From positions 276,345 to 340,344 of IMG/VR virus record IMGVR_UViG_3300050120_000152: a stretch of 64,000 nt of DNA. One strand, written 5' to 3'. The notes beneath the pieces are model-generated. The model had not been told where the DNA came from and ran no database searches. It saw nothing but the letters and a program-made list of their open reading frames with translations. Positions 7,675 through 62,031 of this stretch are shown here, piece after piece (within the stretch, counting starts at the first letter, position 1; each line of letters starts with the position of its first letter). The position numbers were made by a program, and so were the translations under genes.

Positions 7675-7739
7675 CAAGAGAATCCATCATTAGATTGTAT
7701 GATCTATTTATTCACGGAAACTTAAAGTTTTTTCTGTGT

Positions 7740-10634
7740 TTAAAATTGTTGAAGCATAGAAGGAGTCAGTGAAGTTACTATGTTAATATTATCTACTGAT
7801 ATACTTGGTTGAATAATTTCATTTTCCTTTGCATATACTTGAAACATATCACCGAATATATGTGTGTTATAGGTTGGGACTAACACAATGGAACTTATAT
7901 CATTTGGTAATGTAGTATGAATGTATGTTGCAAGTTCGGTGAAATAAAATGTTTGACCAAATTCCCATTGATTGATATCAAAATATGCGTTGATAGCGTC
8001 TACAATAGCGGTCTTTACCTGATTATTGGTAAGTGTTGTATTTTGTGATCTTATAACCTTAAACGATGCTTGCAAGGTGTTATTTGCGTTAGCACCAAAT
8101 AATACTTTAATACTCCCCGAATGTAATATAATCTCATCACTAATCATTTTACTTTGTAGTAAATATCCATAATCATTTTTCAATTCAAATGGGGTAGGTG
8201 GGGTAGGTTGAATTAATATTTGCCCTGTTAACCATTGACGTAATAAATTATAATATCCACGAGTAATTATATACGAATCTATTATATTCGATGGTGCCGG
8301 GTCAACCAAATGATAACGGGGTGTTCTATGCATCCATAAGAAATTGATATTCTCTCTACCCATCTCAACTTTCCATAGATTGGTACCAGCAGTTTGATCG
8401 GCATTATAGGATGCTACAGTAGCTGTCGAATATGGGACATATGACCATTCACATCCTGATACACACGCTCTATTAAAGTACACTAGTGTAGCCGGGGATA
8501 TCAAATAAGATAATGTGACATAATCTGGTATACCATCACCATTAATATCGCCCGGTAATAATATTAGATCATTGATACTATCTAACCCTTTATTTTCACC
8601 TGTTTCATAGACATATTGACTAACAACATTTAAATTATAATTAGTAGTTAGTATATGGTTATTTGGATCAGTGTTAGCAGATAAAACTACAATTTGGTCA
8701 TAATTACCATTTAAAGTATCATAAGTGATAGTTTTAGCTTCAGTATTGGTAATCCAAAAATCCAATCCACTACTATGCATAATAACGCGTTTAGCTAGAA
8801 ATTGTATATCCCAATAATAATCAGTTTGTGACTCTATAGAAATCCAATAACTTTGTGGTACTGTTAGCGAAACCTGCCATGTATTAGTAGGAACATCGTA
8901 GTTTAAATAAACTGTTTGTGGTAATGCATTAACCGCGTTAGATAATGCAGCCTGTATTTGCATGGCTTCCAGTGTAGTAAATTGTGTGCGGATAAGTTGG
9001 GGTATAACACCAAATAGTAATGATTTTGTATAAAATTCATCTGTTGATAAAATAGGTTGAATATAGTTTGTAACCAATGCCATAGTTAAATTAACATTAG
9101 CGCCAAAATCTGGAGCAGGTAATGATCCGGGTGCTATTAACTTATCAACGGAATAACTATTAAAATATATAACACCATCATCAGAAAACATTTTTACATT
9201 ATCATAATATTCTCGTGGATCATGCCATTCAATATATTTTGAATCACCGGCAAATGTTCTATTAATAGCTCGTAATTTTAATATAGAATTATCTTGTAAC
9301 ATGAATTGATTATAATCTTGACCATTAACCATACGATCTTGAGTATAATATGCTGCTGGTGCTATTCTTCGGATATGTTCTATATCTTCTGATGGTGAAG
9401 CATTCTGGATAGAATCAACAAGTGAAAACGCAAATGTTAGTGTTTGTTTTTTGCCATTATTGTCAGCATAGGCGATACTATTTGACATATTTTGAATAGC
9501 ATTAGCAGGAATGACGGCATCACTATTTGCCGATATTCTTGACCATATTTCAAATGATCCAGATGGAATAGCTGCGAAATTACCGTCACCAAATACTAAT
9601 CTAAATTCATCATTATCTAAGGTTTCAATTTCATACTTATTCATGTTAGTATTAGTATTGAAAATAATGTTTTGACCGTTGGCTACGTCAACCTGCATCC
9701 ACTCGCCTGCACGAAGAGTACTACTACCATCGCCAACAATAATAGCACCATTAGAATCGATATTATTTAACCATACGTCAGTATTATTAGAATTTTCTAT
9801 CAAAACATCAAATGTTTGGTTTGGTGTTACACCATCAAATACAGTTGTAGTGCGCTGTAACTTCCCCTGTTTTGTAAAGAAAAAGAATCCAGTATTATCG
9901 GAGGCGTCACCAAGACCATCTGAAAGATATAGAATATTCGTACCTAAATTCTTTTCAGGCCGTTTTTCGTAAGGCCCATTAACATCCAATGATGCACTAA
10001 CCAATTCCATTGGATAGGTAACCCCAGATACGTTTATATTATATGATATTACATTGTTATTTAATGGGTTATTATTTAATCCATAGAGTTCAAACACCAC
10101 ATCTTGTACTTGAATGCGATCTGATGGTAAAACTGAACCAAAATTTTGTGCTAATACTCGATTGAGGACAATGAGAAATTGATCTTTCCATTGAGAATTG
10201 TTAGGATCATTCCATAAAATAGTAATATTGGTTAAATTATTACCACGAGAATCAAATACCGATTCGGTAGTCGATATAGATGTAATTTTTACTAAACCTC
10301 TAGCTGGAATATTACGCGATGCATTGTATGATAATAATTTAGCTAATCGCAATACAGATTCTTTTCTATCTGCTTGAGTAACAATATTTTCGTGAGCATT
10401 CATATCTTGTCGATATGCTATCAATTCACCAACATAAGCAAATAATTCTAATATAGCAATAAGTTCTGAAGATTCAATATAATCATTAAAATCTTCTTCA
10501 GGATAATATAATTTCAAATAGTCAAGTAATGACTTTTTGATGCTATCAAAATCCCAAGCAGTAAAATTAATTTGTTGGAAGGCTGTGTAAGCCATTTCCC
10601 ATGTTTCTGCTCGGTTAATTACTCTGGCTACCAT
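7740..10634 (-). CDS. Baseplate wedge subunit, T4 gp6-like
   Basis: N-terminal DFDSIKKSLLDYLK..EDFNDYIESSEL..LELFAY, FGDGNF and QDRMVNGQDY motifs typical of gp6/baseplate J-like proteins. Confidence 0.85.
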   Translation of the reverse strand: MVARVINRAETWEMAYTAFQQINFTAWDFDSIKKSLLDYLKLYYPEEDFNDYIESSELIAILELFAYVGELIAYRQDMNAHENIVTQADRKESVLRLAKLLSYNASRNIPARGLVKITSISTTESVFDSRGNNLTNITILWNDPNNSQWKDQFLIVLNRVLAQNFGSVLPSDRIQVQDVVFELYGLNNNPLNNNVISYNINVSGVTYPMELVSASLDVNGPYEKRPEKNLGTNILYLSDGLGDASDNTGFFFFTKQGKLQRTTTVFDGVTPNQTFDVLIENSNNTDVWLNNIDSNGAIIVGDGSSTLRAGEWMQVDVANGQNIIFNTNTNMNKYEIETLDNDEFRLVFGDGNFAAIPSGSFEIWSRISANSDAVIPANAIQNMSNSIAYADNNGKKQTLTFAFSLVDSIQNASPSEDIEHIRRIAPAAYYTQDRMVNGQDYNQFMLQDNSILKLRAINRTFAGDSKYIEWHDPREYYDNVKMFSDDGVIYFNSYSVDKLIAPGSLPAPDFGANVNLTMALVTNYIQPILSTDEFYTKSLLFGVIPQLIRTQFTTLEAMQIQAALSNAVNALPQTVYLNYDVPTNTWQVSLTVPQSYWISIESQTDYYWDIQFLAKRVIMHSSGLDFWITNTEAKTITYDTLNGNYDQIVVLSANTDPNNHILTTNYNLNVVSQYVYETGENKGLDSINDLILLPGDINGDGIPDYVTLSYLISPATLVYFNRACVSGCEWSYVPYSTATVASYNADQTAGTNLWKVEMGRENINFLWMHRTPRYHLVDPAPSNIIDSYIITRGYYNLLRQWLTGQILIQPTPPTPFELKNDYGYLLQSKMISDEIILHSGSIKVLFGANANNTLQASFKVIRSQNTTLTNNQVKTAIVDAINAYFDINQWEFGQTFYFTELATYIHTTLPNDISSIVLVPTYNTHIFGDMFQVYAKENEIIQPSISVDNINIVTSLTPSMLQQF

Positions 10635-36334: not shown

Positions 36335-36922
36335 ATGGAAGATATTTTAATTTGGATAGATTTAGAGACAACAGGACTAGATCAAGATGATAAAATGCAT
36401 GGTTGTATTGACCATTGTATTCTAGAAATTGGTTTGCATTTAACCGATTCCAATTTCAATTTATTGGATGAAGGTATACAGATTGCCATTTTCCATCCTC
36501 GTGAATATATTGATATGAAGATGTGCGATTTTGTTAAGCAAATGCATACCGATAATGGATTACTAGAAGATGTAAGTAATTCAGTAGTTTCAACTAATAT
36601 AGCAGATATGATGATTTGTCGATATCTTGAATCACATAATGTACCCAAAGGTAAATCACCAATCTGTGGTAATAATGTAAGTTTCGACAAGAATTTCATT
36701 GCCGCACAAATGCCAATGTTGATGGATTATTTACATTATAGAAAGATTGACGTATCATCCTTTAAAGAAGTCTCTAAAGCATTATCACCAGAAACGGCAT
36801 TAATAGTCAATGCATACAAATATGCTGACGATCAAACTAATCGTGCACACCGCGCTCTTGACGATATTAAAAAATCTATAGGTGAAATGCAAATATATCG
36901 TGACTACATGATTAAAAGGTAA
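36335..36922 (+). CDS. orn: Oligoribonuclease (DEDDh)
   Basis: WIDLETTGLD, MHTDNGL, CGNNVSFDKNF, HYRKIDVSS and HRALDDI motifs. Confidence 0.92.
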   Translation: MEDILIWIDLETTGLDQDDKMHGCIDHCILEIGLHLTDSNFNLLDEGIQIAIFHPREYIDMKMCDFVKQMHTDNGLLEDVSNSVVSTNIADMMICRYLESHNVPKGKSPICGNNVSFDKNFIAAQMPMLMDYLHYRKIDVSSFKEVSKALSPETALIVNAYKYADDQTNRAHRALDDIKKSIGEMQIYRDYMIKR

Positions 36923-36950: not shown

Positions 36951-38108
36951 TCAATCATAATACTCTGGTAAGGTATAGTGTATATTATTTATGATTTTTT
37001 TAATAGTAGAACTATCAATTCCGTATAATTTAGCTAATGTGGTTGATCCATACCCTCTACAATTGGGTATATAATCTCGTCTAATGGCTTTTATTATTTC
37101 TATTGGTAGTTTTGCATTATGATTAATTTTTTTAGGTATATTTTTTACTTTCTCCCATTTTCGACCCATGGCAGGCAATCCATTTTCAATAATAAAGTTT
37201 CTAAGAAATAACACTAAAGAAAAATTTAAATTAATATAAAAGTAGCCTCTACTATTTAATTTAGGAATATGTTTTGATGTGATCCCACTTATTTCCTTAA
37301 GTGTTTCATAAAAATATAATAAATTAGATTGCCATGAAGCATGACATTCCACTTTACAATCAACAGTATTATGATGATATTTAATTGATCCATCACCATC
37401 AATAAAACCGATTAACATTGAGATGAATTGTGTTGGAGATAAATTATAATTTTTTATATTGGGTGGGTTATATGTTTTGTTATTTGTAATAAAAAATTTA
37501 TCAATTATTTTAATCATAGCATCTCCAGTCATAATAAACGTCGCAATTCGTTTGGTAGGTTTAATCTGGATTCCTCTTATAAATTTAATTTTATTAGATT
37601 TATTTTCATATATCGTTATAGGGCGTACTTTCCCTAAATATTTTCCTAATTTTTCTAAATGATTAGTGTCAGTTGCCGATATTTTAAGTTGACAACTATT
37701 ATTTTTAAAATGTGCATCTGCTAATAAAAAACCAATCCAATAATAACTCTCTTTACTATCATCTAAGAGTTTTTCAAGATTGAGATTATCTTTAATATAA
37801 AATTTACGTTTTCTTAAATTTAAAAGCTTTACTCTATACATCAAATCGAATCTGGTTACATTAAATTTTAATATAAAATGTTTCTCTGGCATCACAGAAT
37901 ACATTTGAGTCAAATATTCATCTTCGTCACTAGACCATATGCGGGCACTTTTTTTCACCGTAAGATTCAAATATCTTTTCCTAGCTTTAATAGAATTGGC
38001 TGAACGCATTAATATTGATGCTATTTGTGCAATAGGCATATCTTTATTTTCAATAAGAAAATTATTTTCTAGTTCATTCCATTTGCGTATAATCCGATAT
38101 TGTGTCAT
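36951..38108 (-). CDS. LAGLIDADG homing endonuclease
   Basis: YWIGFLLADA and MLIGFIDGDG motifs, N-terminal W-repeats and C-terminal HTH. Inserted antisense to neighbours with its own ATAAATA promoter. Confidence 0.85.
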   Translation of the reverse strand: MTQYRIIRKWNELENNFLIENKDMPIAQIASILMRSANSIKARKRYLNLTVKKSARIWSSDEDEYLTQMYSVMPEKHFILKFNVTRFDLMYRVKLLNLRKRKFYIKDNLNLEKLLDDSKESYYWIGFLLADAHFKNNSCQLKISATDTNHLEKLGKYLGKVRPITIYENKSNKIKFIRGIQIKPTKRIATFIMTGDAMIKIIDKFFITNNKTYNPPNIKNYNLSPTQFISMLIGFIDGDGSIKYHHNTVDCKVECHASWQSNLLYFYETLKEISGITSKHIPKLNSRGYFYINLNFSLVLFLRNFIIENGLPAMGRKWEKVKNIPKKINHNAKLPIEIIKAIRRDYIPNCRGYGSTTLAKLYGIDSSTIKKIINNIHYTLPEYYD

Positions 38109-38141: not shown

Positions 38142-38690
38142 ATGCCAATTATAAAATATTTTGCCGGAATCGGCTCAAGATCGACACCAATAGAGTTAAA
38201 ATCTGTTATTTATGAGATATCTTGTAAGTTGATAGAACATGATTGGGTTTTACGAAGTGGTGGGGCCAATGGTGCAGATGAATTTTTTGAGTCGGCATAT
38301 ACAACATTAAATGGTAATAAAGAAATATATATCCCATGGAAAGGTTTTAATAAAAGCAAATCTACTTTATTTTATACTCCACCAGAGGCATTCAAGGTAG
38401 CTAAACACTTTCATTCACGTTGGAATTATCTATCACAAGCTGCACAAAAATTAATGGCACGAAATGTTTTACAAGTGTTAGGACAGTCTCTTGTACATCC
38501 AGTAGAATTTGTTATTTGTTGGACTGAGGATGGATGCGAATGCCAAAAAACTAGAAACATAAAAACTGGTGGGACTGGACAAGCTATATCTATTGCTGAA
38601 TATTGGGATGTTCCAGTTATCAATATGGCAAATTGGAATTGGAAAGACCGACTTAATGATATTACAGGAATAAACTTATATGAAAGTTAA
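38142..38690 (+). CDS. SLOG/DprA-like protein
   Basis: FAGIGSRSTP..LRSGGANGADEFFE..ARN..GGTGQA. Confidence 0.8.
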   Translation: MPIIKYFAGIGSRSTPIELKSVIYEISCKLIEHDWVLRSGGANGADEFFESAYTTLNGNKEIYIPWKGFNKSKSTLFYTPPEAFKVAKHFHSRWNYLSQAAQKLMARNVLQVLGQSLVHPVEFVICWTEDGCECQKTRNIKTGGTGQAISIAEYWDVPVINMANWNWKDRLNDITGINLYES

Positions 38691-39237
38691 AGAGCCACAT
38701 GTATATCTAGATATAGTAGAATATAATAGAGAATTTAGTGAAATTTCGCAAATAGATATAATGATAGAAAATATAGAAGATTATATGTTTTTCTTTGAAT
38801 GGTATAGAAATGATAGACATATTAGAAAAACATTAATCATAGGTAAATATATAATCGAAAATGTTACTATTCAAAAAATGAACGATAATGTAGCTGAACT
38901 TACTGGTAGAGTCATATATGACTCAAGCATTTCGTATGTTATTTCAAAATATATAAAGAATGAAGTTTGTCTAACAATTGAACAGCTAAGCAAAGCAGTC
39001 AGTCTGTATTCAGGCAAATACATGGATAATATGATTCTAGAATTGCCCGATGAATGCTTCAATGAACGATTATTGAATGTACTAGAAAATAATCCCAATA
39101 ATATTTCATCTAAAATAAAAAATTGGGCATATATGAAAATTAAATTAAACTTGGAAAATTATGAACAGTTCTGTGAAGCACGTTATACTAAACGATACAA
39201 TAAAGGATACAAGTTCGCTGAATTCGATTTTTCTTAA
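38680..39237 (+). CDS. Hypothetical protein
   Basis: 185-aa ORF overlapping both neighbours. Confidence 0.5.
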   Translation: MKVKEPHVYLDIVEYNREFSEISQIDIMIENIEDYMFFFEWYRNDRHIRKTLIIGKYIIENVTIQKMNDNVAELTGRVIYDSSISYVISKYIKNEVCLTIEQLSKAVSLYSGKYMDNMILELPDECFNERLLNVLENNPNNISSKIKNWAYMKIKLNLENYEQFCEARYTKRYNKGYKFAEFDFS

Positions 39238-39541: not shown

Positions 39542-40039
39542 ATGTTTTTTGGTATAATAGACAAATTAAAGCAACGTAGTGCAAAACGACAGGCTGATTA
39601 TGCTAAATTTATAGCTGATCGTGGGATAGCTAAACAGATATTGATAGTACGCAAAGATTTAAATATGCGTAAGGGTAAGATAGCAGCACAGTGTGCGCAT
39701 GCTAGTCTAGGTGCTATTTTAAAAAATTCTACTACTGAATATATCCATTCGGAATTAAGTTGTCATAGTTTGATGAAACGTATTATTACATATGATTCTG
39801 AAAGTTCTATGGCATCATGGTTAAATCATAGTTTCACTAAAATATGTGTCTATGTAAATTCTGAAGAAGAGTTGTTACAAATACAGTCTCAGGCTATATC
39901 AGCAGGAATATTAAATTGTCTTATAACAGATTCTGGTAAAACTGAATTTAATAATATACCAACTAACACAGTATTAGCATTAGGCCCAGCATGGTCAACA
40001 GATATTGATCCGATAACAAAACATTTACCATTATTGTAA
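39542..40039 (+). CDS. Peptidyl-tRNA hydrolase, Pth2 type
   Basis: VRKDLNMRKGKIAAQCAHAS..KI..DSGKTEF..TVLALGP..IDPITKHLPLL. Confidence 0.92.
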   Translation: MFFGIIDKLKQRSAKRQADYAKFIADRGIAKQILIVRKDLNMRKGKIAAQCAHASLGAILKNSTTEYIHSELSCHSLMKRIITYDSESSMASWLNHSFTKICVYVNSEEELLQIQSQAISAGILNCLITDSGKTEFNNIPTNTVLALGPAWSTDIDPITKHLPLL

Positions 40040-41894: not shown

Positions 41895-41931
41895 GTAAAA
41901 ATACCTCCAACAGAACCAGAAAAAGAAGCCC
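41865..41931 (+). promoter_or_regulatory. Antiterminator helix
   Basis: GCTTCTTTGTCTG (41865-77) is complementary to CAGAAAAAGAAGC (41917-29) at 12 of 13 positions and invades the terminator 5' arm. Confidence 0.7.
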
Positions 41932-41953
41932 GCGAAATGCGGGCTTTTTGTTT
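41926..41953 (+). terminator. Intrinsic terminator upstream of tRNA array (attenuator)
   Basis: AAGCCCGC-GAAAT-GCGGGCTT-TTTGTTT. Confidence 0.9.
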
Positions 41954-41986
41954 AAATGATCTTTAAAAACTTGAAAATATTTATAT

Positions 41987-42078
41987 GGGTAGGCACCGAA
42001 GTTGGAGAGTCGGAGGGCGCTGTAAACGCTCCGCATGAAAATAAGTCTGAGTAGGTTCGAATCCTATACTACCCACCA
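41987..42078 (+). tRNA. tRNA-Tyr(GTA)
   Basis: GGGCG-CTGTAAA-CGCTC arm, long variable arm, GGTTCGAATCC, encoded CCA. Confidence 0.9.
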
Positions 42079-42361: not shown

Positions 42362-42436
42362 GGGTTACAAGCATTAATAGTGATGCAGGAGACTCTTAAT
42401 CTTCAGAATAGGGAGCATTACCCTAGTAACCCACCA
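42362..42436 (+). tRNA. tRNA-Lys(CTT), non-canonical D/T loops
   Basis: GGGTTAC/GTAACCC, GGAGA-CTCTTAA-TCTTC, T arm TAGGG-AGCATTA-CCCTA, ACCA. Confidence 0.8.
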
Positions 42437-42441
42437 AATAT

Positions 42442-42517
42442 GGGCATCCTACACTATGGAGTAGGCAATTTTGAAACTCAAGATTGGTATTAGGTTCGAA
42501 TCCTATTATGTCCACCA
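42442..42517 (+). ncRNA. tRNA-like gene with closed, elongated anticodon arm
   Basis: Acceptor, D-like and TTCGAAT arms plus ACCA. Anticodon arm is CAATTTTGA-AAC-TCAAGATTG. Confidence 0.65.
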
Positions 42518-42523
42518 AAATAT

Positions 42524-42599
42524 GGGTCATAAACATTAATACGTGATGTAGGAGTCCTTTAAACTTCAAAACTCGGGGCGGTACCGAGATGACCCACCA
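42524..42599 (+). tRNA. tRNA-Lys(TTT), non-canonical (C33, GGCGGTA T-loop)
   Basis: GGGTCAT/ATGACCC, GGAGT-CCTTTAA-ACTTC, CTCGG-GGCGGTA-CCGAG, ACCA. Confidence 0.75.
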
Positions 42600-42606
42600 A
42601 ACATAT

Positions 42607-42684
42607 GGAACGTAGCGCGAAGTGGTAAGCGACTCGACTTTTAATCGAACAGACTACTGGGTTCAAGCCCCAGACGTTCCACCA
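42607..42684 (+). tRNA. tRNA-Lys(TTT)
   Basis: GGAACGT/ACGTTCC, TCGA-CTTTTAA-TCGA, TTCAAGC loop, ACCA. Confidence 0.85.
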
Positions 42685-42690
42685 AAATAT

Positions 42691-42816
42691 GGAGCAGAGG
42701 CCAAACGGTTAGGCAATCGGCTGTGGGAAAAGATGTAAAGGCATCCAAAGCTAGTTCAAGTCTAGTATTCCAAAGGTAACCGATGATATAGGGTTCGACT
42801 CCCTACTGCTCCGCCA
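42691..42816 (+). tRNA. tRNA-Asn(GTT) interrupted by a 52-nt anticodon-loop insertion (42725-42776)
   Basis: GGAGCAG/CTGCTCC acceptor, G73, CCA. ATCGG-CTGT[insert]TAA-CCGAT reconstitutes a typical Asn arm. Confidence 0.75.
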
Positions 42817-42835
42817 TTTTATATGATTTATTTGG

Positions 42836-43108
42836 ATGAAAAATAACATGAATAACGATTTTGAAGTAAAAATCATATCTGATAAGAAAATTAAAGTTTC
42901 TATTGAAGAGATTTTATCTATAAGAAAACGATGTAAAGAGATAAATTCTGTAAAACTTAATGATATTGAATTTACTTTTGATGGAAAAATTATTAATCCT
43001 TCATTAGAAGATATAGAGCATTGGTACTTTACCGGATTAAATAATATTGATTTTGTTAGATGTATATTAGAAGGGGAATATATTCCTTTACAAAATATAG
43101 ATGATTGA
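42836..43108 (+). CDS. Hypothetical protein
   Basis: 90-aa ORF between tRNA genes. Confidence 0.55.
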   Translation: MKNNMNNDFEVKIISDKKIKVSIEEILSIRKRCKEINSVKLNDIEFTFDGKIINPSLEDIEHWYFTGLNNIDFVRCILEGEYIPLQNIDD

Positions 43109-43186: not shown

Positions 43187-43798
43187 ATGTCACAGACTAA
43201 TAATTATAGAAATGTTAAAAATTATAGATTAAGAATAAAAGATATTGTTTTATTTTCTATGGGAAATAAATGTCAAATATGTAAGTATGATAAATGTAAA
43301 GCAGCATTAGAAATTCATCATGTTGACCCCACGACAAAAGAATATTCTATTAATGAAATTAAATCTTGGAGTAAGATGTGTGCAGAATTACCAAAATGTA
43401 TCTTATTATGTGCTAATTGTCACCGAGAAGTTCATCATAATGATTTAAAAATTCCTACCGAATATAATAGATTTGATCAAGAAAAAGCAAATGGTTTAAA
43501 AATTGAACAAGCAGAATTAGGTAGAATTATAAGCAATAAAGCGGTGATTAAATATAACAAACAGTTAGCCATCCAGAGAAAAATAGATTATCAAGAAAAA
43601 TTAAAACTTCTTAAAGAAGTTAGAACTAATATAATATTAAATTCTAACATAGATTTTACTAAATTTGGTTGGGGTGAGCAATTGGGAAAATGTTTTGGTA
43701 TAAGTAGACAAAAAGCGTCAGCATGGTTTAAAAAGCATTTACCAGATATGTATTATTCTAATAATATTAAGAAATTTCCACGAAAAACGGTTGTGTAG
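43187..43798 (+). CDS. HNH homing endonuclease
   Basis: CQICKY..LEIHHVDP..CILLCANCHREVH. Stop codon lies inside tRNA-Ile. Confidence 0.85.
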   Translation: MSQTNNYRNVKNYRLRIKDIVLFSMGNKCQICKYDKCKAALEIHHVDPTTKEYSINEIKSWSKMCAELPKCILLCANCHREVHHNDLKIPTEYNRFDQEKANGLKIEQAELGRIISNKAVIKYNKQLAIQRKIDYQEKLKLLKEVRTNIILNSNIDFTKFGWGEQLGKCFGISRQKASAWFKKHLPDMYYSNNIKKFPRKTVV

Positions 43799-48280: not shown

Positions 48281-48354
48281 TGGGAATAAATCAAATAGAG
48301 AGATATCTGGCTTTGAACCAGAGTAAGTGGGAGCATTACCCTCATTCCCATCCA
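48281..48354 (+). tRNA. tRNA-Gln(TTG), non-canonical AGCATTA T-loop
   Basis: TGGGAAT/ATTCCCA (T1-A72), TCTGG-CTTTGAA-CCAGA, CCA. Confidence 0.8.
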
Positions 48355-48697: not shown

Positions 48698-49780
48698 ATG
48701 TCAACATTTACCGAGTTTTATAAAAAGCCGACCATTGCTCTTATCGTAGCAATCGTGTTAGGTGGTTTAATTGGATATCACGATTCTGGTGTCATTGGTG
48801 CAGCTATCACGTCTGCTATGACAGTTATAATCCTTTCCATTTTAGAAATATCCATGTCGTTTGATAACGCAGTTTTAAATGCAAAAATTCTCAAGCCCAT
48901 GTCAGATGCCGCTCGTAATTGGTTCATGTTATGGGGTATCCTGATCGCAGTAGTTGGAATGCGCCTGCTAGTCCCTGTATTGATCGTATCAGCGGTTGGA
49001 AGTATGGCACCATGGACAGCATTCATGATTGCACTCACTAATCCATCACAGTATTCAACATTATTAACTTCATCAGCTGATTATGTATCAGCCTTTGGTG
49101 GATCATTCTTGATGATGGTTGCATTGAACTTCTTTCTTGGTGACGAAAAAGAAACCAATTGGTTACACTTTTTAGAAGTTCCTTTAGCTAAATTGGCTAA
49201 ACTTGAAGTAGTTATTACGTTACTAGTTGTAATTTTGGCGGCATTGGGTGTTAATCATGACCGTCAATTTACGTTCGTTATGGCTGGTTCTTTGGGTATT
49301 ATGCTAAACATTGCCATCGGTGTTCTAAAAGAGAAACTTGAAGAACATGCACCAGAAGCTGCTCAAGGCGTTGCAGTTACAATTAAAAGCGCCATCGCAA
49401 GCCTAATTTATCTTGAAGTTCTTGATGCAAGCATGTCATTTGATGGTGTGATCGGTGCATTTGCAATCACTACAGAAATTTTCTTGGTAATGCTTGGTCT
49501 TGGTGTAGGTGCAATGTTCGTTCGTGGTATGACTATTAACTTAGTCAAAAATGATACCATGGCTGAATATCGCTATCTTGAACATGGTGCATTGTGGTCA
49601 ATCGCGGTATTAGCGGCCATCATGTTCATCAAAGTTAATCATCATGTGCCAGAACTCTTTACAGGATTGATAAGTGCTGCTATAATTGCAATTGCAGTAG
49701 TCCATTCTCATATTTTGAACAAACGTGAAGCATCATCCACCGCAACAACTCTAGTCGATTATAAGCCCGAAGTACTTTAA
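48698..49780 (+). CDS. DUF475/TerC-like integral membrane protein
   Basis: LEISMSFDNAVLNA..GMRL and YLEVLDASMSFDGVIGAFAIT..YLEHGA. Confidence 0.88.
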   Translation: MSTFTEFYKKPTIALIVAIVLGGLIGYHDSGVIGAAITSAMTVIILSILEISMSFDNAVLNAKILKPMSDAARNWFMLWGILIAVVGMRLLVPVLIVSAVGSMAPWTAFMIALTNPSQYSTLLTSSADYVSAFGGSFLMMVALNFFLGDEKETNWLHFLEVPLAKLAKLEVVITLLVVILAALGVNHDRQFTFVMAGSLGIMLNIAIGVLKEKLEEHAPEAAQGVAVTIKSAIASLIYLEVLDASMSFDGVIGAFAITTEIFLVMLGLGVGAMFVRGMTINLVKNDTMAEYRYLEHGALWSIAVLAAIMFIKVNHHVPELFTGLISAAIIAIAVVHSHILNKREASSTATTLVDYKPEVL

Positions 49781-49788
49781 GGAAAAAT

Positions 49789-50880
49789 ATGCCAATCCCA
49801 ATTAATATTTTCGGCAACCATGCCATAGTTACGCCAGACGGTTCAACAGTTCCCATTACTGATGCTACTCTTGCCGTTCAATTTACAGCATTAACACCGT
49901 CAGTACAAAACCAACAGATCGCCACCATTACAGAAGATTATATTATGAATATAGGATCAGCATCCTCTAAAGGATTGACTGATCTTACATCCAAGATTTT
50001 ATCATCTGCCAGTGCTACCAGTGGCGGTGAAATGGGGGCTAAATTAGATGAATTAATCGATACTACTAAAGGCATGTCAGTTGATAATTTTCAAGCTAAT
50101 CCCTTAACAAAATTCTTTAACAAAGCATTACGTATGAAAGATCATGCTATGGAAACTTTCCAGACAGCTAATGATCGCGTCAATATTCTTGTTGCGCAGC
50201 TTGAAAAAGAGCGTAATGGGCAAGATAGTGATAGAAAATCTATTGATGCATTGGCACAGCAAAATTACGAATATTGCAAAGCTATTATAGTAGAAATTGA
50301 TGATGCTAAGGAAAAGTATGCCACACTTGGCAATGCTATTGGTAAATTTGGTACCAGCGATCAATCACCAGATTTTGAACAGGCAAAAATCTTAGATGAT
50401 TTACAAACTAAGTATGATATGCTTGAAAAGAAAATTGTAGATTTAGAAGCCAATAAACTTCTTTCTATGAACATGGAACCGAAATTAAAGTTAATGAAGC
50501 AAGGTTCTATCAGTCTTATTGGTACATTCGATAATATCGTAGGTAAAATTGTACCATTATATATGCAACAATTTGCAGCTTATTTGATTATGCAACGTCA
50601 AACTCAAACTGCTGCTGTAGGCGACAAGGCAATTGCTATGTTCAACCAGCAAATTATTGCTGGTAGTAATAAGGCAGCAGCAAACGCAGAAGCTATTGCA
50701 CAATTAAGTCAAAAGCAAATTATTGATGTAGACACTTTGAAGAAAGATCATGAGAATGTGGTTAATTCTCTCGATAAGGTAAAGCAAATTGCACTCGATG
50801 CAAGAACCAACCGCAAGGCCATCATGCAAGAAATCCAAACGATGGAACAAGATACAATTAACGCATTTTCTAAACATTAA
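49789..50880 (+). CDS. Toxic anion resistance protein, TelA-like
   Basis: Coiled-coil protein with IIDVDTLKK C-terminal motif, in ter context. Confidence 0.75.
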   Translation: MPIPINIFGNHAIVTPDGSTVPITDATLAVQFTALTPSVQNQQIATITEDYIMNIGSASSKGLTDLTSKILSSASATSGGEMGAKLDELIDTTKGMSVDNFQANPLTKFFNKALRMKDHAMETFQTANDRVNILVAQLEKERNGQDSDRKSIDALAQQNYEYCKAIIVEIDDAKEKYATLGNAIGKFGTSDQSPDFEQAKILDDLQTKYDMLEKKIVDLEANKLLSMNMEPKLKLMKQGSISLIGTFDNIVGKIVPLYMQQFAAYLIMQRQTQTAAVGDKAIAMFNQQIIAGSNKAAANAEAIAQLSQKQIIDVDTLKKDHENVVNSLDKVKQIALDARTNRKAIMQEIQTMEQDTINAFSKH

Positions 50881-50895
50881 ACTAAGGAATTAAAT

Positions 50896-51708
50896 ATGAC
50901 TGCAACAAATAAAATTAGCCTTTTGAAGGCCCAATCAGATAAAGTTAAAATTTCACTTGAAAAGCGTCAAGTATTAACTGCGCCAATCGTTCGTGTTGGC
51001 GAAGCATTGGATATCAGTGGTTCTATGAATCACGCATATCAGAATGGTGATGTTTCTAAGATCGTATTTCGTACATTAGCATTAGCCAATATCTTCGATG
51101 ATAATGGTGAAATGGATATGTGGGCATTCAATACCGATGTTACTCAACTAGAATCTGCCACCCCAAACAATTTCGATCAGTTTGTTAATGATGAAGTCAT
51201 TCATGGTGTAGGTATTGGTGGCGGCACTCGTTATAGTCCATGTTTAGAAGCTATTAGCGAATTTTATTTCCCCGCACATCCAGCTACTACTTCCGCTACT
51301 TCCGCTACTTCCGCTGTTTCTGCACCAAAGAAAGGATTCTTATCTAAGTTGTTTGGCAAGTCTGCCCCAGAATCGCAGGTAGTCGTACCGATCCTTAAAG
51401 GCACCCCACAGGCTGCTGTTGCGAATGTTGATCCAGCCACTATTCCGGCACTTGCCATCTTTATTACGGATGGTGAAAACGATATTAATGACGTTTCCGC
51501 TGCTGAACGTGTGTTGAAGAATGCACAAAATAAAGAAATCTATTGGCTACTGGTTGGCATTGGGCATAGTAACTTCACATGGTTAGAAAAAATGGCTGAC
51601 AAGTATCCTAATGTTGGATTCTTGAGTTTTGAACATCTTGACATGTCAGATGAAGAGCTTTATGATGGTGTCATCAGCGAAGAGTTTGTGAACTGGATTA
51701 AGAAATAA
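50896..51708 (+). CDS. vWA domain protein (TerF/TerY-associated type)
   Basis: LDISGSM MIDAS motif, FDDNGEMD, GGTRY, FITDGE, VGIG. Confidence 0.85.
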   Translation: MTATNKISLLKAQSDKVKISLEKRQVLTAPIVRVGEALDISGSMNHAYQNGDVSKIVFRTLALANIFDDNGEMDMWAFNTDVTQLESATPNNFDQFVNDEVIHGVGIGGGTRYSPCLEAISEFYFPAHPATTSATSATSAVSAPKKGFLSKLFGKSAPESQVVVPILKGTPQAAVANVDPATIPALAIFITDGENDINDVSAAERVLKNAQNKEIYWLLVGIGHSNFTWLEKMADKYPNVGFLSFEHLDMSDEELYDGVISEEFVNWIKK

Positions 51709-51762
51709 TTCAATTCACTATAAACAATAACATTAAATAAATTATAAATTAGGGAACAAAAT

Positions 51763-52392
51763 ATGAGTATTTCATTACAGAAAAAAGAAAAAATTTCATT
51801 GACCAAAGGTACACCGGGTCTTAAAAATATCCTTGTTGAATTGACATGGAGTGTTGATCCAACTACGATTCCAAAAAATGCAGTAAATCCAAAAGGTCTT
51901 TTTGATGCTGATTTGAGTGCATTCGTTTGCGAAACACGAAATGTTAAAGGTCAACCAACATCACAGGTTATTGATGATGTGTTTACATGTTTCTTCAATA
52001 ATCCTCAGACTGCTGACGGTGCTGTTGTATCGTTGGATGGTGATGATGCCGGTAATGATGGTGACGGTAAGGAAGAAATTGCAGTTGATTTGAGTAAGCT
52101 TGATAAGCGAGCGTCTGAAATTGCATTCGTAGCAACCATTGATAAGGGTGACGTTCGGCATCAATCATATGGTCAGATCACTGGTGGTAGCATCAAGGCT
52201 ATCAATCAGGATACTGGCGACGTGTTGGCCGAATTCAAGTATGGTAATAGTGCATATACTACCGAAACGGCTATTCAGGTTGCTTCCTTGGTAAGTGATG
52301 GTAATGGTGGATGGGAATTTCATGCAAATGGTGACGGTGGAGTAAAAACGTTTATTGATATTGCAACTCAAGATTTTGGGTTCCCAGCCTAA
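51763..52392 (+). CDS. TerD/TerE-family protein
   Basis: ISLQKKEKISLTK..DADLSAF..FFNN..GDD..GDGKEEI..WEFHA. Confidence 0.88.
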   Translation: MSISLQKKEKISLTKGTPGLKNILVELTWSVDPTTIPKNAVNPKGLFDADLSAFVCETRNVKGQPTSQVIDDVFTCFFNNPQTADGAVVSLDGDDAGNDGDGKEEIAVDLSKLDKRASEIAFVATIDKGDVRHQSYGQITGGSIKAINQDTGDVLAEFKYGNSAYTTETAIQVASLVSDGNGGWEFHANGDGGVKTFIDIATQDFGFPA

Positions 52393-54671: not shown

Positions 54672-55952
54672 ATGTCAAAGAAATATGCCATGCTCGTTAA
54701 GGTCAATGTTGGCGATAATAACAATAAATTCTATGAAATCATTTGGAATGATGATGATAGCGTTACAGCCCGATATGGCCGCAATGGCGATAATGGAGTA
54801 ACCGAGCAGAAAGGTTACGGTGAAGCGGCCTTCAATAAGGTGTATAAAGCGAAGACTGGAGCCAGCAAAGGCTATAAAGAAGTTGATGTTCTAACTAATC
54901 AAGGTGGAACGACACCAAAAGCAGTTACTAAATCGGTATCATCCTTGGCAGAAATCGCAAAACGTGACGTAAGCAAAGGTAATCCTTTACTCGCTAACTT
55001 GATGGATCAGTTGGCAAAAATCAATAAGTATCAACTATTACAGGCCACTGGTGACCAGATTGACATTGTTGATGGTGTTGTTCAGACGGTGCTTGGCCCT
55101 ATTACTCTTGATGCCGTTGCGAAAGCACGCTCAGAACTATTACTATTGGATAAGTTTATTACCAATAATGATTTTGGTGATAAGTTCGGCGAGCATTTAA
55201 ATCAATATTTAACTTATGTTCCACAGAAGGTTCCGCGTAAACGTGGATGGGATCAAAACTTTTTTACGGAAGTAACATCTTTCCAAGCCCAGAATGGTTT
55301 ATTAGATCAAATTGAAGGTTCTATTAAAAACTATAAGCCTATTGATCCAGTGGTTGATGGTAGTTTACCTGAACCGGCTAAAATCTTTGGTCATAGTCTT
55401 GAATTGGTGGAAGACGGTGCAACTATTGATCGAATCAAGAAATTCTATGCTTCCAATATGAATAGAAGTCATGCATGTTCACATCTCACATTGAAACGTG
55501 TTTATGCAGTTTCCAACCCTGATGCATTAAACAAATATGAATCAATTTATTCAAAAATAGGAAATGAAAAAGAGTTATGGCACGGAACGCAGGCGGTAAA
55601 TATTTTATCAATTCTTAAAGGCGGATTAATTATCCCTAATTCTGGTGGTAATTATAATATTACTGGACGCATGTTTTATAACGGAATCTATCATTCCGAT
55701 CAAAGCACTAAAGCATTAAATTATGCATACGGTTATTGGAATGGAACTAAAAATAATAATTGCTTCATGTTTTTGTGTCGAACGGCAATGGGTAAAGAAT
55801 ATATCCCAAATGCACCATTTAGTAAACCAATTCCAAAAGGCTATGATTCATGTTTTGCTATTGGTGGTAAAAGTGGTGTACAAAATAATGAAATGATTGT
55901 ATATGATGTTAATCAAACGTATTTAAATTATTTATGTGAGTTTGATTCATGA
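54672..55952 (+). CDS. Poly(ADP-ribose) polymerase-like protein (WGR + regulatory + PARP catalytic domain)
   Basis: NNNKFYEI..YGRNG (WGR), YLTYVP, LWHGT..SILKGGL..GRMFYNGIYHSD..KALNYA..NNEMIVY (H-Y-E triad). Confidence 0.9.
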   Translation: MSKKYAMLVKVNVGDNNNKFYEIIWNDDDSVTARYGRNGDNGVTEQKGYGEAAFNKVYKAKTGASKGYKEVDVLTNQGGTTPKAVTKSVSSLAEIAKRDVSKGNPLLANLMDQLAKINKYQLLQATGDQIDIVDGVVQTVLGPITLDAVAKARSELLLLDKFITNNDFGDKFGEHLNQYLTYVPQKVPRKRGWDQNFFTEVTSFQAQNGLLDQIEGSIKNYKPIDPVVDGSLPEPAKIFGHSLELVEDGATIDRIKKFYASNMNRSHACSHLTLKRVYAVSNPDALNKYESIYSKIGNEKELWHGTQAVNILSILKGGLIIPNSGGNYNITGRMFYNGIYHSDQSTKALNYAYGYWNGTKNNNCFMFLCRTAMGKEYIPNAPFSKPIPKGYDSCFAIGGKSGVQNNEMIVYDVNQTYLNYLCEFDS

Positions 55953-61253: not shown

Positions 61254-61314
61254 CATTGGTTCAGTTCATAAACACAGCACCATTTATTGTATAAATAAAA
61301 TGAATGGTGCTTAT

Positions 61315-62031
61315 ATGAATATTGAAGATAAAAAGAAAAAGATTGTAAATGAAATAAATGATTTTATAAAAGTGTACCAAAGGTATCCTTCTAAAAATGA
61401 ATATAATAATAGAGATGATTTACCCCACCAAAATACAGTATTAAGAATTATTGGAACTCATTCTGAATACCAATCAAAGGGTATTATTAACCCTAGCCCC
61501 AACCCTATACCTAAACCATCTCACTATTGCATAGCATGTGGAATAGAATTATTAAATAATAGTAATAAATTTTGTAATCGTTCATGTGCGGCATCATTCA
61601 ATAATAAAAAGCGTGACATGGCTTGTAATACTAGGGGTACATGTAAACAATGTTTTGCTACCTTAAGAAATCGTGCTGGTAAATGGTATTGTAGTAAATC
61701 ATGTCATCATGAATATAGATTCTTAGAATTAATAGATAATTGGATAATAGATGGTAATACCACTGGTGATCCTATCACATTAAAAAAGATGATAACCAGA
61801 TTACATGGATATAGCTGTGCTAACGCTACCTGCCAATTATCGGATTGGGATGGTAAATCTATTGTTTTACAATTGGAGCATAAAGATGGTAACAGTGAAA
61901 ATAATAGTGTAACAAATTTATGTTTATTATGTCCTAATTGTCATAGTCAAACATCAACATTTACAGGTAAAAATAGAGGTAATGGTAGACACGTTCGTCG
62001 TCAACGTTATAAAGATGGCAAAAGTTACTAA
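61315..62031 (+). CDS. HNH homing endonuclease with Cys-rich N-terminal modules
   Basis: LQLEHKDGNSENNSVTNLCLLCPNCHSQT. Start probably 61315 (GGTG RBS, TATAAATA at 61290). Confidence 0.88.
   Translation: MNIEDKKKKIVNEINDFIKVYQRYPSKNEYNNRDDLPHQNTVLRIIGTHSEYQSKGIINPSPNPIPKPSHYCIACGIELLNNSNKFCNRSCAASFNNKKRDMACNTRGTCKQCFATLRNRAGKWYCSKSCHHEYRFLELIDNWIIDGNTTGDPITLKKMITRLHGYSCANATCQLSDWDGKSIVLQLEHKDGNSENNSVTNLCLLCPNCHSQTSTFTGKNRGNGRHVRRQRYKDGKSY

Follow-up and report, generated by a model that had tools for sequence, protein, structure and literature searches.

Introns in bacterial and phage tRNA genes are, in the textbook view, group I ribozymes, which interrupt anticodon loops in bacterial, cyanobacterial and phage tRNA genes and need a catalytic core of about 200 nt or more. 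Short, protein-dependent tRNA introns are instead considered a hallmark of archaea and eukaryotes, in which a bulge-helix-bulge is cut by the EndA/Sen endonuclease and the halves, held together by the tRNA body, are rejoined by the RtcB or Trl1 ligase. The closest published relative of the element examined here is the group of "enigmatic" introns in tRNAs of Lak megaphages (Devoto et al., 2019; PMC6784885), which lie in the anticodon loop at 36/37, are 79–114 nt long, match no Rfam ribozyme or intron, and are highly conserved between divergent genomes. No mechanism was proposed or tested in that paper, and in the library searched we found no follow-up to it. These introns begin with a small hairpin and an A/U-rich linker, followed by a tRNA-like part in which an acceptor-like stem of 7–9 bp closes a canonical T arm, often with D and closed anticodon arms as well; the authors noted that the Thr intron "may encode a tRNA".

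Here we examine a tRNA-Asn gene of a XacN1-like jumbo myovirus from peat, whose anticodon is interrupted by a 52-nt insert shaped like a miniature tRNA. The gene lies in a 64,000-nt stretch of IMG/VR record IMGVR_UViG_3300050120_000152 (positions 276,345 to 340,344, hereafter the window), and all coordinates for this gene are those of the window, on the plus strand. The element had first been noticed in a sequence-only reading, and that observation is confirmed: 42691–42816 is an intact tRNA body carrying 59 nt where a 7-nt anticodon loop belongs. The first exon (42691–42724) comprises the acceptor 5' strand GGAGCAG (42691–42697), the D arm (42700–42714, with 42700–42702 pairing with 42712–42714), the 5' strand of the anticodon stem, ATCGG (42716–42720), and the loop bases C32, U33, G34 and U35 (42721–42724). 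The second exon (42777–42816) comprises U36, A37 and A38 (42777–42779), the 3' strand of the anticodon stem, CCGAT (42780–42784), the variable loop, the T arm (42789–42805), the acceptor 3' strand CTGCTCC (42806–42812), G73 (42813), and an encoded CCA (42814–42816). Neither ARAGORN, with or without its intron option, nor the Rfam tRNA model calls the gene, but a split-tRNA scanner that we wrote finds exactly this one element in the window (relaxed versions were too noisy to use). An identical 239-nt contig spanning 42597–42835 is present in a second peat metagenome from another study, and so the insert is not an assembly artefact.

Upon removing 42725–42776, ARAGORN calls a 74-nt tRNA, and, as the sequence-only reading had listed, the choice of junction gives Asn (GTT), Thr (GGT) or His (GTG). 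That reading took the product not to be fixed by sequence alone, and on this point it needs correction. The anticodon GUU and the discriminator G73 belong to the E. coli identity set for Asn, and G73, G1-C72/G2-C71 and T at position -1 fit Asn, whereas the phage's own tRNA-His has G-1/C73 and its own tRNA-Thr(GGT) has C2-G71/A73; the split gene has none of these His or Thr features. Furthermore, the tRNA-Asn of the cultured relative XacN1 has G1, G2, G73 and the loop CTGTTAA.

The intervening sequence (42725–42776) is predicted to fold as the three-way junction that had been described from sequence alone. G42725 is left unpaired in front of a closing, acceptor-like stem, GGAA (42726–42729) with TTCC (42768–42771), although a register shifted by one appears in the minimum free energy fold. 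Within it lie a D-like hairpin, GATG-TAAAGG-CATC (42732–42745), which forms the GG-bearing connector, and a nested T arm, GCTAG-TTCAAGT-CTAGT (42750–42766), with A42767 as a spacer before the 3' strand of the closing stem. A 5-nt tail, AAAGG (42772–42776), reaches to the 3' junction and can pair imperfectly with C32–U35 of exon 1. The folding energy is only modestly better than that of shuffled sequences (z = -1.7 to -1.8, with 13 of 200 shuffles folding as well). What is beyond chance is the nested T arm, with its 5-bp stem, G53-C61 equivalent and TTCAAGT loop: from 2 × 2.2 Mb of large-phage DNA, such a motif outside called tRNAs would be expected at most 0.0011 times in a 52-nt insert, and most of those background hits are themselves uncalled tRNA-like genes. 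Two T arms 26–62 nt apart on one strand occur in 2.2 Mb only here, in the Lak-A1 Phe and Thr introns, in one tRNA followed by a free minihelix in another big phage (contig L079), and in four motif-only matches with no nested tRNA-like element, of which two were inspected.

The absence of homologous inserts with compensatory changes had been named in advance as grounds for refuting the finding, and the search for them came out in its favor. Matching inserts occur at the same site of tRNA-Asn in seven other phage contigs, from two unrelated phage groups. Type B, of 46 nt, is found in cyanomyovirus-like contigs (L316, with the insert at 3562–3607 of a gene at 3528–3645, and also L244, L309 and L314), and type C, of 49 nt, in contigs L322 (with the insert at 2845–2893 of a gene at 2811–2931), L312 and L320. 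With ours as type A, the family thus comprises eight contigs including the source contig, and two alignments and a table of pairs show that its members share the insertion site (CUGU | UAA), a purine-rich GG(G)A start, a GG-bearing connector, a T arm with loop TTCRANT, and a closing stem. Both nested stems show compensatory double changes: T-stem pairs 3 and 4 read T-A/T-A/G-C and A-T/G-C/A-T, and the closing stems read GGAA/TTCC, GGAAAAG/TTTTTCC and GGAGA/TCTCC. The D-like hairpin is not conserved in form, types B and C keeping only an A-rich stretch ending in GG. The three variants were retrieved with a pattern that fixes the anticodon stem, so that family size and diversity are under-sampled. 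A blastn search with types B and C against GenBank phages found no cultured phage with the insert, but Bacillus phage Moonbeam has an uninterrupted counterpart of the type C tRNA-Asn, with the same anticodon arm and the loop CTGTTAA (a further hit, in LR756504, is an ordinary tRNA).

Other searches for relatives returned little. Megablast and blastn against GenBank phages, exact 34-mer and 25-mer scans of IMG/VR, and searches with neighboring proteins in IMG/VR and JGI metagenomes found no close relative of the phage, the best PTH2 relative being 57–60% identical; covariation among orthologues was therefore not assessed. An IMG/VR scan with a pattern demanding GG-R-AAAAG, which excludes type B, gave 17 hits outside the source contig, all by chance, and a scan of a collection of genome contigs with the family pattern gave 83 hits, none in a tRNA context, at or below our chance estimate of about 137. 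The ORFs just downstream of the three variants are not homologous, so there is no intron-linked protein.

The sequence-only interpretation is in part supported. A tRNA-Asn split at 35/36 by an elbow-shaped insert, which is neither a group I intron nor a bulge-helix-bulge intron, is borne out, and the first role that had been suggested, excision by elbow-recognizing nucleases plus an RNA ligase, gains real support from type B. Here the insert runs exactly from the first base of a 7-bp acceptor-like stem to one discriminator-like nucleotide past it; stacked on the T arm, this stem makes a 12-bp minihelix, and so RNase P and RNase Z sites coincide with the two junctions. A type C contig, L312, also encodes an Rnl1-family RNA ligase (6936–8027; PF09511, E 6e-13), whose gene starts 6.4 kb downstream of the 3' end of the split tRNA, together with a metallophosphoesterase and an HNH nuclease. 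XacN1 has three Rnl2 ligases and a Pnkp/Hen1-like set (PMC7824862; PMC5852040), although its Hen1 used as a query found nothing in IMG/VR. A ligase elsewhere in the genome had likewise been proposed as something to look for; among the ORFs of the window there is no RNA ligase, kinase-phosphatase or splicing endonuclease, the other 276 kb of the contig (into which a giant first ORF runs off the window start) not having been examined. Every Lak-type intron that we checked places its 3' junction right after the base that follows the nested acceptor stem, namely the published Lak Tyr, Phe, Thr and Gly introns (Table S6 of PMC6784885), Lak-A1 Phe and Thr as read from contig L171, and two further introns of that type that we found in IMG/VR, in L201 and L222. 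We considered whether the published split Lak "Tyr(GTA)" gene is really Asn; Lak-A1 has uninterrupted copies of both, which leaves the point undecided.

Our preferred, though still tentative, explanation is that the insert is a protein-dependent intron cut out through its tRNA mimicry and sealed by a ligase, of the same general kind as the tRNA-like introns of Lak megaphages. In this view the precursor cannot decode, because its anticodon is split and partly paired; the tRNA-like module would recruit the cell's tRNA end-processing enzymes, with RNase P cutting at its 5' end (U-1 | G+1), which is the 5' junction, and a 3'-end maker such as RNase Z cutting at its 3' end. These cuts would leave a 3'-OH on exon 1 and a 5'-phosphate on exon 2, the halves would stay together through the acceptor, D/T and anticodon stems, and an ATP-dependent RNA ligase of the phage Rnl type would seal the nick to give the loop CUGUUAA. 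The analysis itself establishes the gene anatomy, the Asn identity, the homologous family with its compensatory changes, the intron-less counterpart, and the exact fit of RNase P/Z geometry in type B; that splicing happens, which enzymes carry it out, and how the 3' cut is placed in this particular variant are inferences. A mature RNA lacking the insert was not measured here: only DNA runs hold this phage, and in two run searches and one mapping of reads no RNA coverage of the gene was found, the one "RNA" run matching only the neighboring tRNA-Lys. The geometry is also less tidy outside type B. In our variant and in type C the closing stem is only 4–5 bp, G+1 is unpaired, and the junction lies 5 nt past the stem (type C has the tail GAGAT, type B a single nucleotide), so that a plain RNase Z cut after the discriminator would leave four extra bases. 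The fit then needs either a helix extended by imperfect exon-tail pairing or a cut at the position-76 equivalent. In the Lak-type introns, moreover, the 5' junction is about 30 nt upstream of the nested tRNA, so RNase P cannot make it there.

These same observations leave room, though we think it unlikely, for a true intron removed by another route, for example by a phage-encoded or unknown endonuclease that measures from the host tRNA body, cutting four bases after and three bases before the anticodon stem, or by single-strand nucleases such as RNase E followed by trimming; the tRNA-like module would then be a chaperone or handle rather than the cutting signal. Both junctions sit at a fixed distance from the anticodon stem in all three variants while their distance from the nested stem varies, and the window encodes an RNase T-family exonuclease (36335–36922). 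On the other hand, no candidate endonuclease was found in the window, no bacterial enzyme with such a ruler mechanism is known, and the exact minihelix geometry of type B would be coincidence.

Equally unlikely, in our judgment, is that the RNA is never spliced, the 126-nt molecule being itself a non-decoding, two-elbow product that acts as a decoy or sponge for host tRNA-targeting defense nucleases or tRNA-binding factors, or as a stored inactive precursor. The gene does sit in a cluster rich in the usual targets of anticodon nucleases (Tyr, His, Asp and Asn with G34-U35, plus several Lys genes), which also holds other non-canonical, probably non-decoding tRNA-like genes, for example 42443–42518 with a closed 9-bp "anticodon" hairpin; G34 and U35 are partly paired in the predicted precursor fold, and the free-standing minihelix of L079 offers a parallel. 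However, removing the insert restores a perfect 7-nt Asn loop in three independent variants, both junction flanks (CUGU and UAA) are kept exactly, an uninterrupted counterpart exists, and no other tRNA-Asn is present in the window or in the parts of the type B and C arrays examined. Were the RNA not spliced, it would still be a conserved two-elbow tRNA mimic of unknown role.

A selfish DNA element that spreads between tRNA-Asn genes, perhaps helped by neighboring homing endonucleases, and is not removed from the RNA, leaving a pseudogene, is somewhat less likely again. The insert family sits in very different tRNA-Asn bodies sharing an identical anticodon arm, although the search pattern itself required that arm. 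L309 and L316, which are otherwise 62–88% identical, share a region of near-identity around the tRNA. That the insert is as conserved as the exons between these two contigs speaks for the preferred reading, but the identity extends about 400 nt upstream of the tRNA, and so may reflect recent transfer rather than selection on the insert. HNH-type nucleases lie nearby (a faint match at 43187–43798, a motif read by eye in 61300–62031, and a clear HNH in L312), and the Lak introns are likewise identical across divergent genomes (PMC6784885). Against this, all exon stems are intact in all three variants and the nested stems keep pairing through compensatory changes, which points to selection on an RNA structure rather than decay; there is no target-site duplication or terminal repeat, and the insert is single-copy in the window; a repeated MITE-like element was rejected. 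Mobility of the DNA and splicing of the RNA are, in any case, not exclusive.

If such splicing does occur, it would add a further route of tRNA splicing, show that tRNA mimicry can serve as a splicing signal, explain why tRNA finders miss a share of phage tRNAs, and bear on how phages protect or gate tRNAs that host anticodon nucleases attack. A more far-reaching possibility, which we hold to be doubtful though not ruled out, is that these inserts are a new mechanistic class of tRNA intron in the bacterial world, excised by the universal end-processing enzymes (RNase P, and RNase Z or an equivalent) and sealed by an Rnl-type ligase without any healing step, so that splicing would be neither self-catalyzed nor dependent on a bulge-helix-bulge. 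Phages might use it to make a tRNA active only in infected, ligase-containing cells, or to install a protective mark at the junction through a Pnkp/Hen1-type repair system; either way, the anticodon of a nuclease-targeted tRNA would be shielded.

Compared with the Lak introns, the present insert likewise lies in the anticodon loop of a phage tRNA and has an acceptor-like stem closing a canonical T arm, but there is no sequence similarity. At 52 nt it starts directly with the nested module, lacking the 5' hairpin and A/U-rich linker, has a 4-bp closing stem, a 5-nt tail and no anticodon arm, and sits inside the anticodon. Its 3' junction does not follow the single base after the nested stem, as it does in the Lak introns and type B, unless the imperfect exon-tail helix is counted. 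With the two sister variants, it gives the smallest and cleanest examples so far, and type B, as nothing but an acceptor/T-arm minihelix whose ends are the junctions, turns the vague "enigmatic intron" into a concrete and cheaply testable biochemical proposition.

A group I intron is excluded by size, by the absence of any Intron_gpI match at E up to 10, and because the terminal G, which the sequence-only reading had remarked on as group I-like together with the preceding U, is replaced by T in types B and C. More generally, a self-splicing or self-cleaving ribozyme is very unlikely: HDV-like ribozymes do occur next to phage tRNAs, but no hammerhead, twister, pistol, hatchet or HDV-like family, nor any other ribozyme or intron family, matched 42380–42840 at E up to 10, and the conserved elements are those of a tRNA T arm and not of any known small ribozyme.

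An archaeal-type intron is the least likely of the readings considered. Our variant does show a 3–4-nt bulge (UAA or GUAA) on the 3' strand next to the anticodon stem and a roughly four-layer imperfect helix between the junctions, but there is no second 3-nt bulge, the 5' junction lies inside a helix, and the between-junction helix is absent in type B and weak in type C. The position is 35/36 and not 37/38, and the phage is of a bacterial type (XacN1-like, with CCA encoded). No EndA or RtcB was found among the window ORFs scanned, which, with the remainder of the contig and the host unexamined, leaves the availability of EndA undecided. The predicted ends, 3'-OH and 5'-phosphate, are the opposite of the 2',3'-cyclic phosphate and 5'-OH left by EndA.

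A parallel for the proposed cuts is provided by tRNA-like modules released from longer transcripts by RNase P and RNase Z, such as mascRNA from MALAT1 and minihelix model substrates, in which an embedded acceptor/T-arm minihelix is enough to define both ends. Rfam's mascRNA model gave only a chance-level match here, to the host T arm, and in those systems the flanks are not rejoined, whereas here they are the two halves of a tRNA and would need ligation. Such sealing has its counterpart in phage break-and-repair of anticodon loops, as with T4 Pnk plus Rnl1 against PrrC and with bacterial Pnkp/Hen1, where a nick is closed by an ATP-dependent RNA ligase. Repair, however, responds to damage by a host nuclease, while in the present case the break would be programmed by the gene's own structure.

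The window, the last 64 kb of the 340,344-bp IMG/VR contig IMGVR_UViG_3300050120_000152 from a peat metagenome, encodes T4-like baseplate, portal and prohead-protease proteins and has a GC content of about 33%. Its portal is 51% identical to those of the Xanthomonas jumbo phages XacN1 and Xoo-sp13, although no GenBank phage is close at the DNA level. One open reading frame of more than 2,562 codons (window 1-7686, minus strand) runs off the start of the window and is probably a giant tail or fibre protein next to the baseplate genes. ARAGORN and Rfam each find 14 tRNAs, all on the + strand, and among the tRNA genes lie a tellurite-resistance-type gene set (TerC/DUF475, TelA, TerF-like vWA, TerD), a PARP-WGR protein, a PTH2 peptidyl-tRNA hydrolase and an RNase T-family exonuclease (window 48698-52392, 54672-55952, 39542-40039 and 36335-36922).

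The observation made in the sequence-only reading, of a tRNA-Asn gene at 42691-42816 whose anticodon is split by a 52-nt insert, is confirmed. The sequence has a perfect 7-bp acceptor stem, a 3-bp D stem, a 5-bp anticodon stem (ATCGG/CCGAT), a 5-bp T stem with loop TTCGACT, G73 and an encoded CCA, with 59 nt lying between the two halves of the anticodon stem. Neither ARAGORN, also with its intron option, nor Rfam calls it, even at E up to 10, whereas a scanner written to ask for a T arm, acceptor, D stem and an anticodon stem separated by more than a normal loop finds exactly this one element in the window. The minimum-energy fold is the three-way junction that had been proposed, but its energy is only about 1.7 standard deviations better than shuffles, so that thermodynamics alone would not carry the claim. 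No bulge-helix-bulge is formed in these folds, which speaks against an intron of that type, and no small ribozyme family is matched in Rfam.

It is the nested T arm at 42750-42766 that does carry the claim, with five pairs, the inner one G-C, and a loop, TTCAAGT, that fits the T-loop consensus. In 2 x 2.2 Mb of large-phage DNA such a motif occurs 139 times outside called tRNA genes, which gives at most 0.0011 expected per 52-nt insert, and most of those 139 are plainly uncalled tRNA-like genes. The insert is single-copy in the window. A second peat metagenome, from a different study, contains an identical 239-nt contig across it, and it is therefore not an assembly artefact.

Deleting 52 nt makes ARAGORN call a 74-nt tRNA, and the eight possible junctions give Asn (one choice), Thr or His, as had been pointed out from the sequence. 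The product, however, is not really open, as that reading had left it. G73, G1-C72, G2-C71 and a T at position -1 fit Asn, while the phage's own tRNA-His (42105) has the extra G-1 and C73, and its tRNA-Thr(GGT) (48360) has C2-G71 and A73. The tRNA-Asn of XacN1 also has G1, G2, G73 and the loop CTGTTAA, and no other tRNA-Asn is present in the window. For this variant, only a junction between positions 35 and 36 gives GUU. The interpretation offered from sequence alone is supported in part.

Because no close relative of the phage exists in the collections, the architecture of the insert was sought instead. When the scanner was run on 1.5 Mb of PTH2-bearing large-phage loci (these and the other loci compared are designated here by L-numbers), it found other interrupted tRNAs, at L015 14107-14224, L042 6082-6184, L057 11111-11208 and L055 3499-3640 (the same gene also at L057 3215-3356). 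These (Leu-like, two Gly UCC, one class II) carry 27-61-nt inserts in the anticodon loop made of plain hairpins without a T arm, and the two Gly inserts are homologous, with a compensatory change (AACATC/GATGTT against AATATC/GATATT). Short inserts in phage tRNA anticodon loops are therefore not unique. The literature led further to the "enigmatic" introns reported in Lak megaphage tRNAs, one of which, its authors remark, may encode a tRNA (Devoto et al., 2019; PMC6784885). Table S6 of that paper and the Lak-A1 sequence (L171, MK250016) show that every Lak intron contains an acceptor-like stem closing a canonical T arm.

A search of 2.2 Mb for two T arms 26-62 nt apart on one strand recovered our gene, the Lak-A1 Phe and Thr introns, one tRNA followed by a free minihelix, and four other matches that show no nested tRNA-like element (L014, L039, L043 and L069). 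The minihelix, at about 9776-9822 of L079, a 224-kb phage contig, is free-standing and lies directly after a normal tRNA, with a 5-bp stem, a T arm with loop TTCAAAT, and then CCA. Of the four other matches two were inspected: L043 is the anticodon arm of an ordinary tRNA-Leu, and L039 is a tRNA end followed by a truncated T arm. An IMG/VR scan for two common T loops 18-34 nt apart gave 119 loci, among them two more Lak-type introns, in tRNA-Thr(UGU) genes of 235-kb and 99-kb contigs (L201 3871-4022, plus strand, and L222 5773-5936, minus strand), each with a 5' hairpin, an A-rich linker, and then a nested tRNA-like part followed by C and then AA. Also among them was a tRNA-Asn, in L244, with the same anticodon stem as ours and a 46-nt insert beginning with the same bases.

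A scan for the shared flanks then gave eight contigs holding three variants. Type A is ours; type B is in contigs L244, L309, L314 and L316, two of which are 116 and 172 kb, and L314 carries psbA, so that they look like cyanomyoviruses; type C is in contigs L312, L320 and L322. The same pattern found nothing in a tRNA context among 185,579 bacterial and archaeal genomes. All three variants interrupt tRNA-Asn at CUGU | UAA, and all start with GG(G)A, carry an A-rich connector ending in GG, then a T arm with loop TTCRANT, and then the 3' strand of a closing stem. The host tRNA bodies, by contrast, differ almost completely in their acceptor stems. A group I intron is excluded by the size of the insert, by the lack of any Rfam match, and because the terminal G is not conserved.

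A search for homologous inserts with compensatory changes had been named at the outset as a test of the finding, and such changes are indeed seen. The nested T stem shows double compensatory changes at two of its five pairs (T-A, T-A, G-C and A-T, G-C, A-T), and the closing stems are GGAA/TTCC, GGAAAAG/TTTTTCC and GGAGA/TCTCC. The exons of type C are 93% identical to the uninterrupted tRNA-Asn of Bacillus phage Moonbeam, which has the identical anticodon arm and the loop CTGTTAA, and in the alignment the insert is one clean 49-nt gap inside the anticodon. Between L309 and L316 the gene, including the insert, is 100% identical, while the flanks more than about 400 nt upstream and beyond the 3' end of the tRNA are 62-88% identical; as the 400 nt upstream are also 95-99% identical, this may be selection or recent transfer. 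A selfish DNA insertion that merely inactivates the gene is also possible, but it fits poorly with intact exon stems and compensatory changes. Probable HNH homing endonucleases do lie between tRNA genes, at 61300-62031, which shows an HNH motif by eye, and at 43187-43798, which gives a faint Pfam match, and mobility at the DNA level with such neighbours is compatible with RNA splicing. The two 83-nt tRNA-Thr genes in this region (61171, 62042) have long variable arms, like several XacN1 tRNAs.

An unspliced decoy likewise remains possible, since the gene lies in a cluster of tRNAs that anticodon nucleases typically attack, next to other non-canonical tRNA-like genes. An uncalled class II tRNA-Tyr(GUA)-like gene with a long variable region (41986-42078) follows a strong terminator hairpin at 41926-41946, and with His, Asp and the split Asn all four G34-U35 tRNAs sit in one 0.8-kb cluster. 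An uncalled tRNA-Lys(CUU)-like gene at 42362-42436 folds as a clean cloverleaf (z = -4.35) and ends in CCA, but has a short D loop and a non-canonical T loop, AGCAUUA; a tRNA-Gln(UUG)-like gene at 48281-48353 has the same odd T loop. A further uncalled tRNA-like gene, at 42523-42600, has the anticodon loop CCUUUAA (C at position 33, UUU anticodon) and T loop GGCGGUA, and folds as a cloverleaf (z = -2.9); together with the canonical tRNA-Lys at 42607, the cluster holds three Lys-type genes. The tRNA-like gene at 42443-42518, finally, has a canonical T loop and GG in the D loop, but its "anticodon arm" is a closed 9-bp hairpin with a 3-nt loop, so that it cannot decode; the nested tRNA in the Lak-A1 Thr intron has a similar closed 9-bp arm.

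Type B is the informative case as to how such an insert may be removed. It is a 7-bp acceptor-like stem stacked directly on the T arm, plus one further base. The first base of the stem follows U35 (U at -1, G at +1, the usual RNase P context), and the 3' junction follows the single discriminator-like base, which is the RNase Z site of a precursor lacking CCA. Cutting there would leave CUGU with a 3'-OH and UAA with a 5'-phosphate, ends that a T4-type RNA ligase accepts without healing. The Lak-type introns obey the same rule at their 3' junction (nested stem, one C, then A37 A38), but their 5' junction lies about 30 nt upstream of the nested part, so RNase P cannot explain it. By the rule that the junction follows the nested discriminator, the published split "Tyr(GTA)" gene of Lak-A1 (L171, about record 499950-500120, minus strand), which has a class I body and G73, could equally be read as Asn (CUGU + UAA); as Lak-A1 also has uninterrupted Tyr and Asn genes, we do not choose between the two.

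RNA ligase genes had also been singled out beforehand as something to look for. A type C contig, L312, encodes an Rnl1-family RNA ligase, whose gene starts 6.4 kb downstream of the 3' end of the split tRNA, together with a metallophosphoesterase and an HNH nuclease. XacN1, the cultured relative of our phage, has three Rnl2 ligases, a Pnkp/Hen1-like set, two Thg1 homologues and a CCA-adding enzyme. Several XacN1 class I tRNAs (Lys, Gly, Thr, Cys, Asn) carry long variable arms, and an unannotated 2.5-kb gap in that genome (L009, AP018399, 36560-39053) holds a tmRNA (37177-37596), a GOLLD RNA (38570-38983) and further T-arm-bearing tRNA-like sequences. In our own phage, no ligase, kinase-phosphatase or splicing endonuclease is encoded in the window; the other 276 kb of the contig were not examined.

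Our variant does not fit this scheme neatly. Here and in type C the closing stem is only 4-5 bp, with a one-base spacer after the T stem, the first G is unpaired, and five bases, not one, separate the stem from the 3' junction. Two readings rescue the model, neither of them demonstrated. If the unpaired G is counted as a mismatched first pair, the insert runs from +1 to the equivalent of position 76 of a mature tRNA; alternatively, the tail pairs imperfectly with C32-U35 of exon 1, as in the minimum-energy fold, which leaves G42776 as the first unpaired base.

Splicing itself is inferred and not shown. The route via RNase P, RNase Z and a ligase is the best-supported hypothesis, but one held only tentatively, at somewhat less than even likelihood once the claim that splicing occurs is included in it. 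The closest published precedent is the Lak megaphage tRNA intron, an observation without a mechanism and one for which no follow-up was found in the literature we searched. As compared with that known but unexplained intron, the element studied here is smaller, is differently built and sits at a different position, and with types B and C it defines a distinct family.
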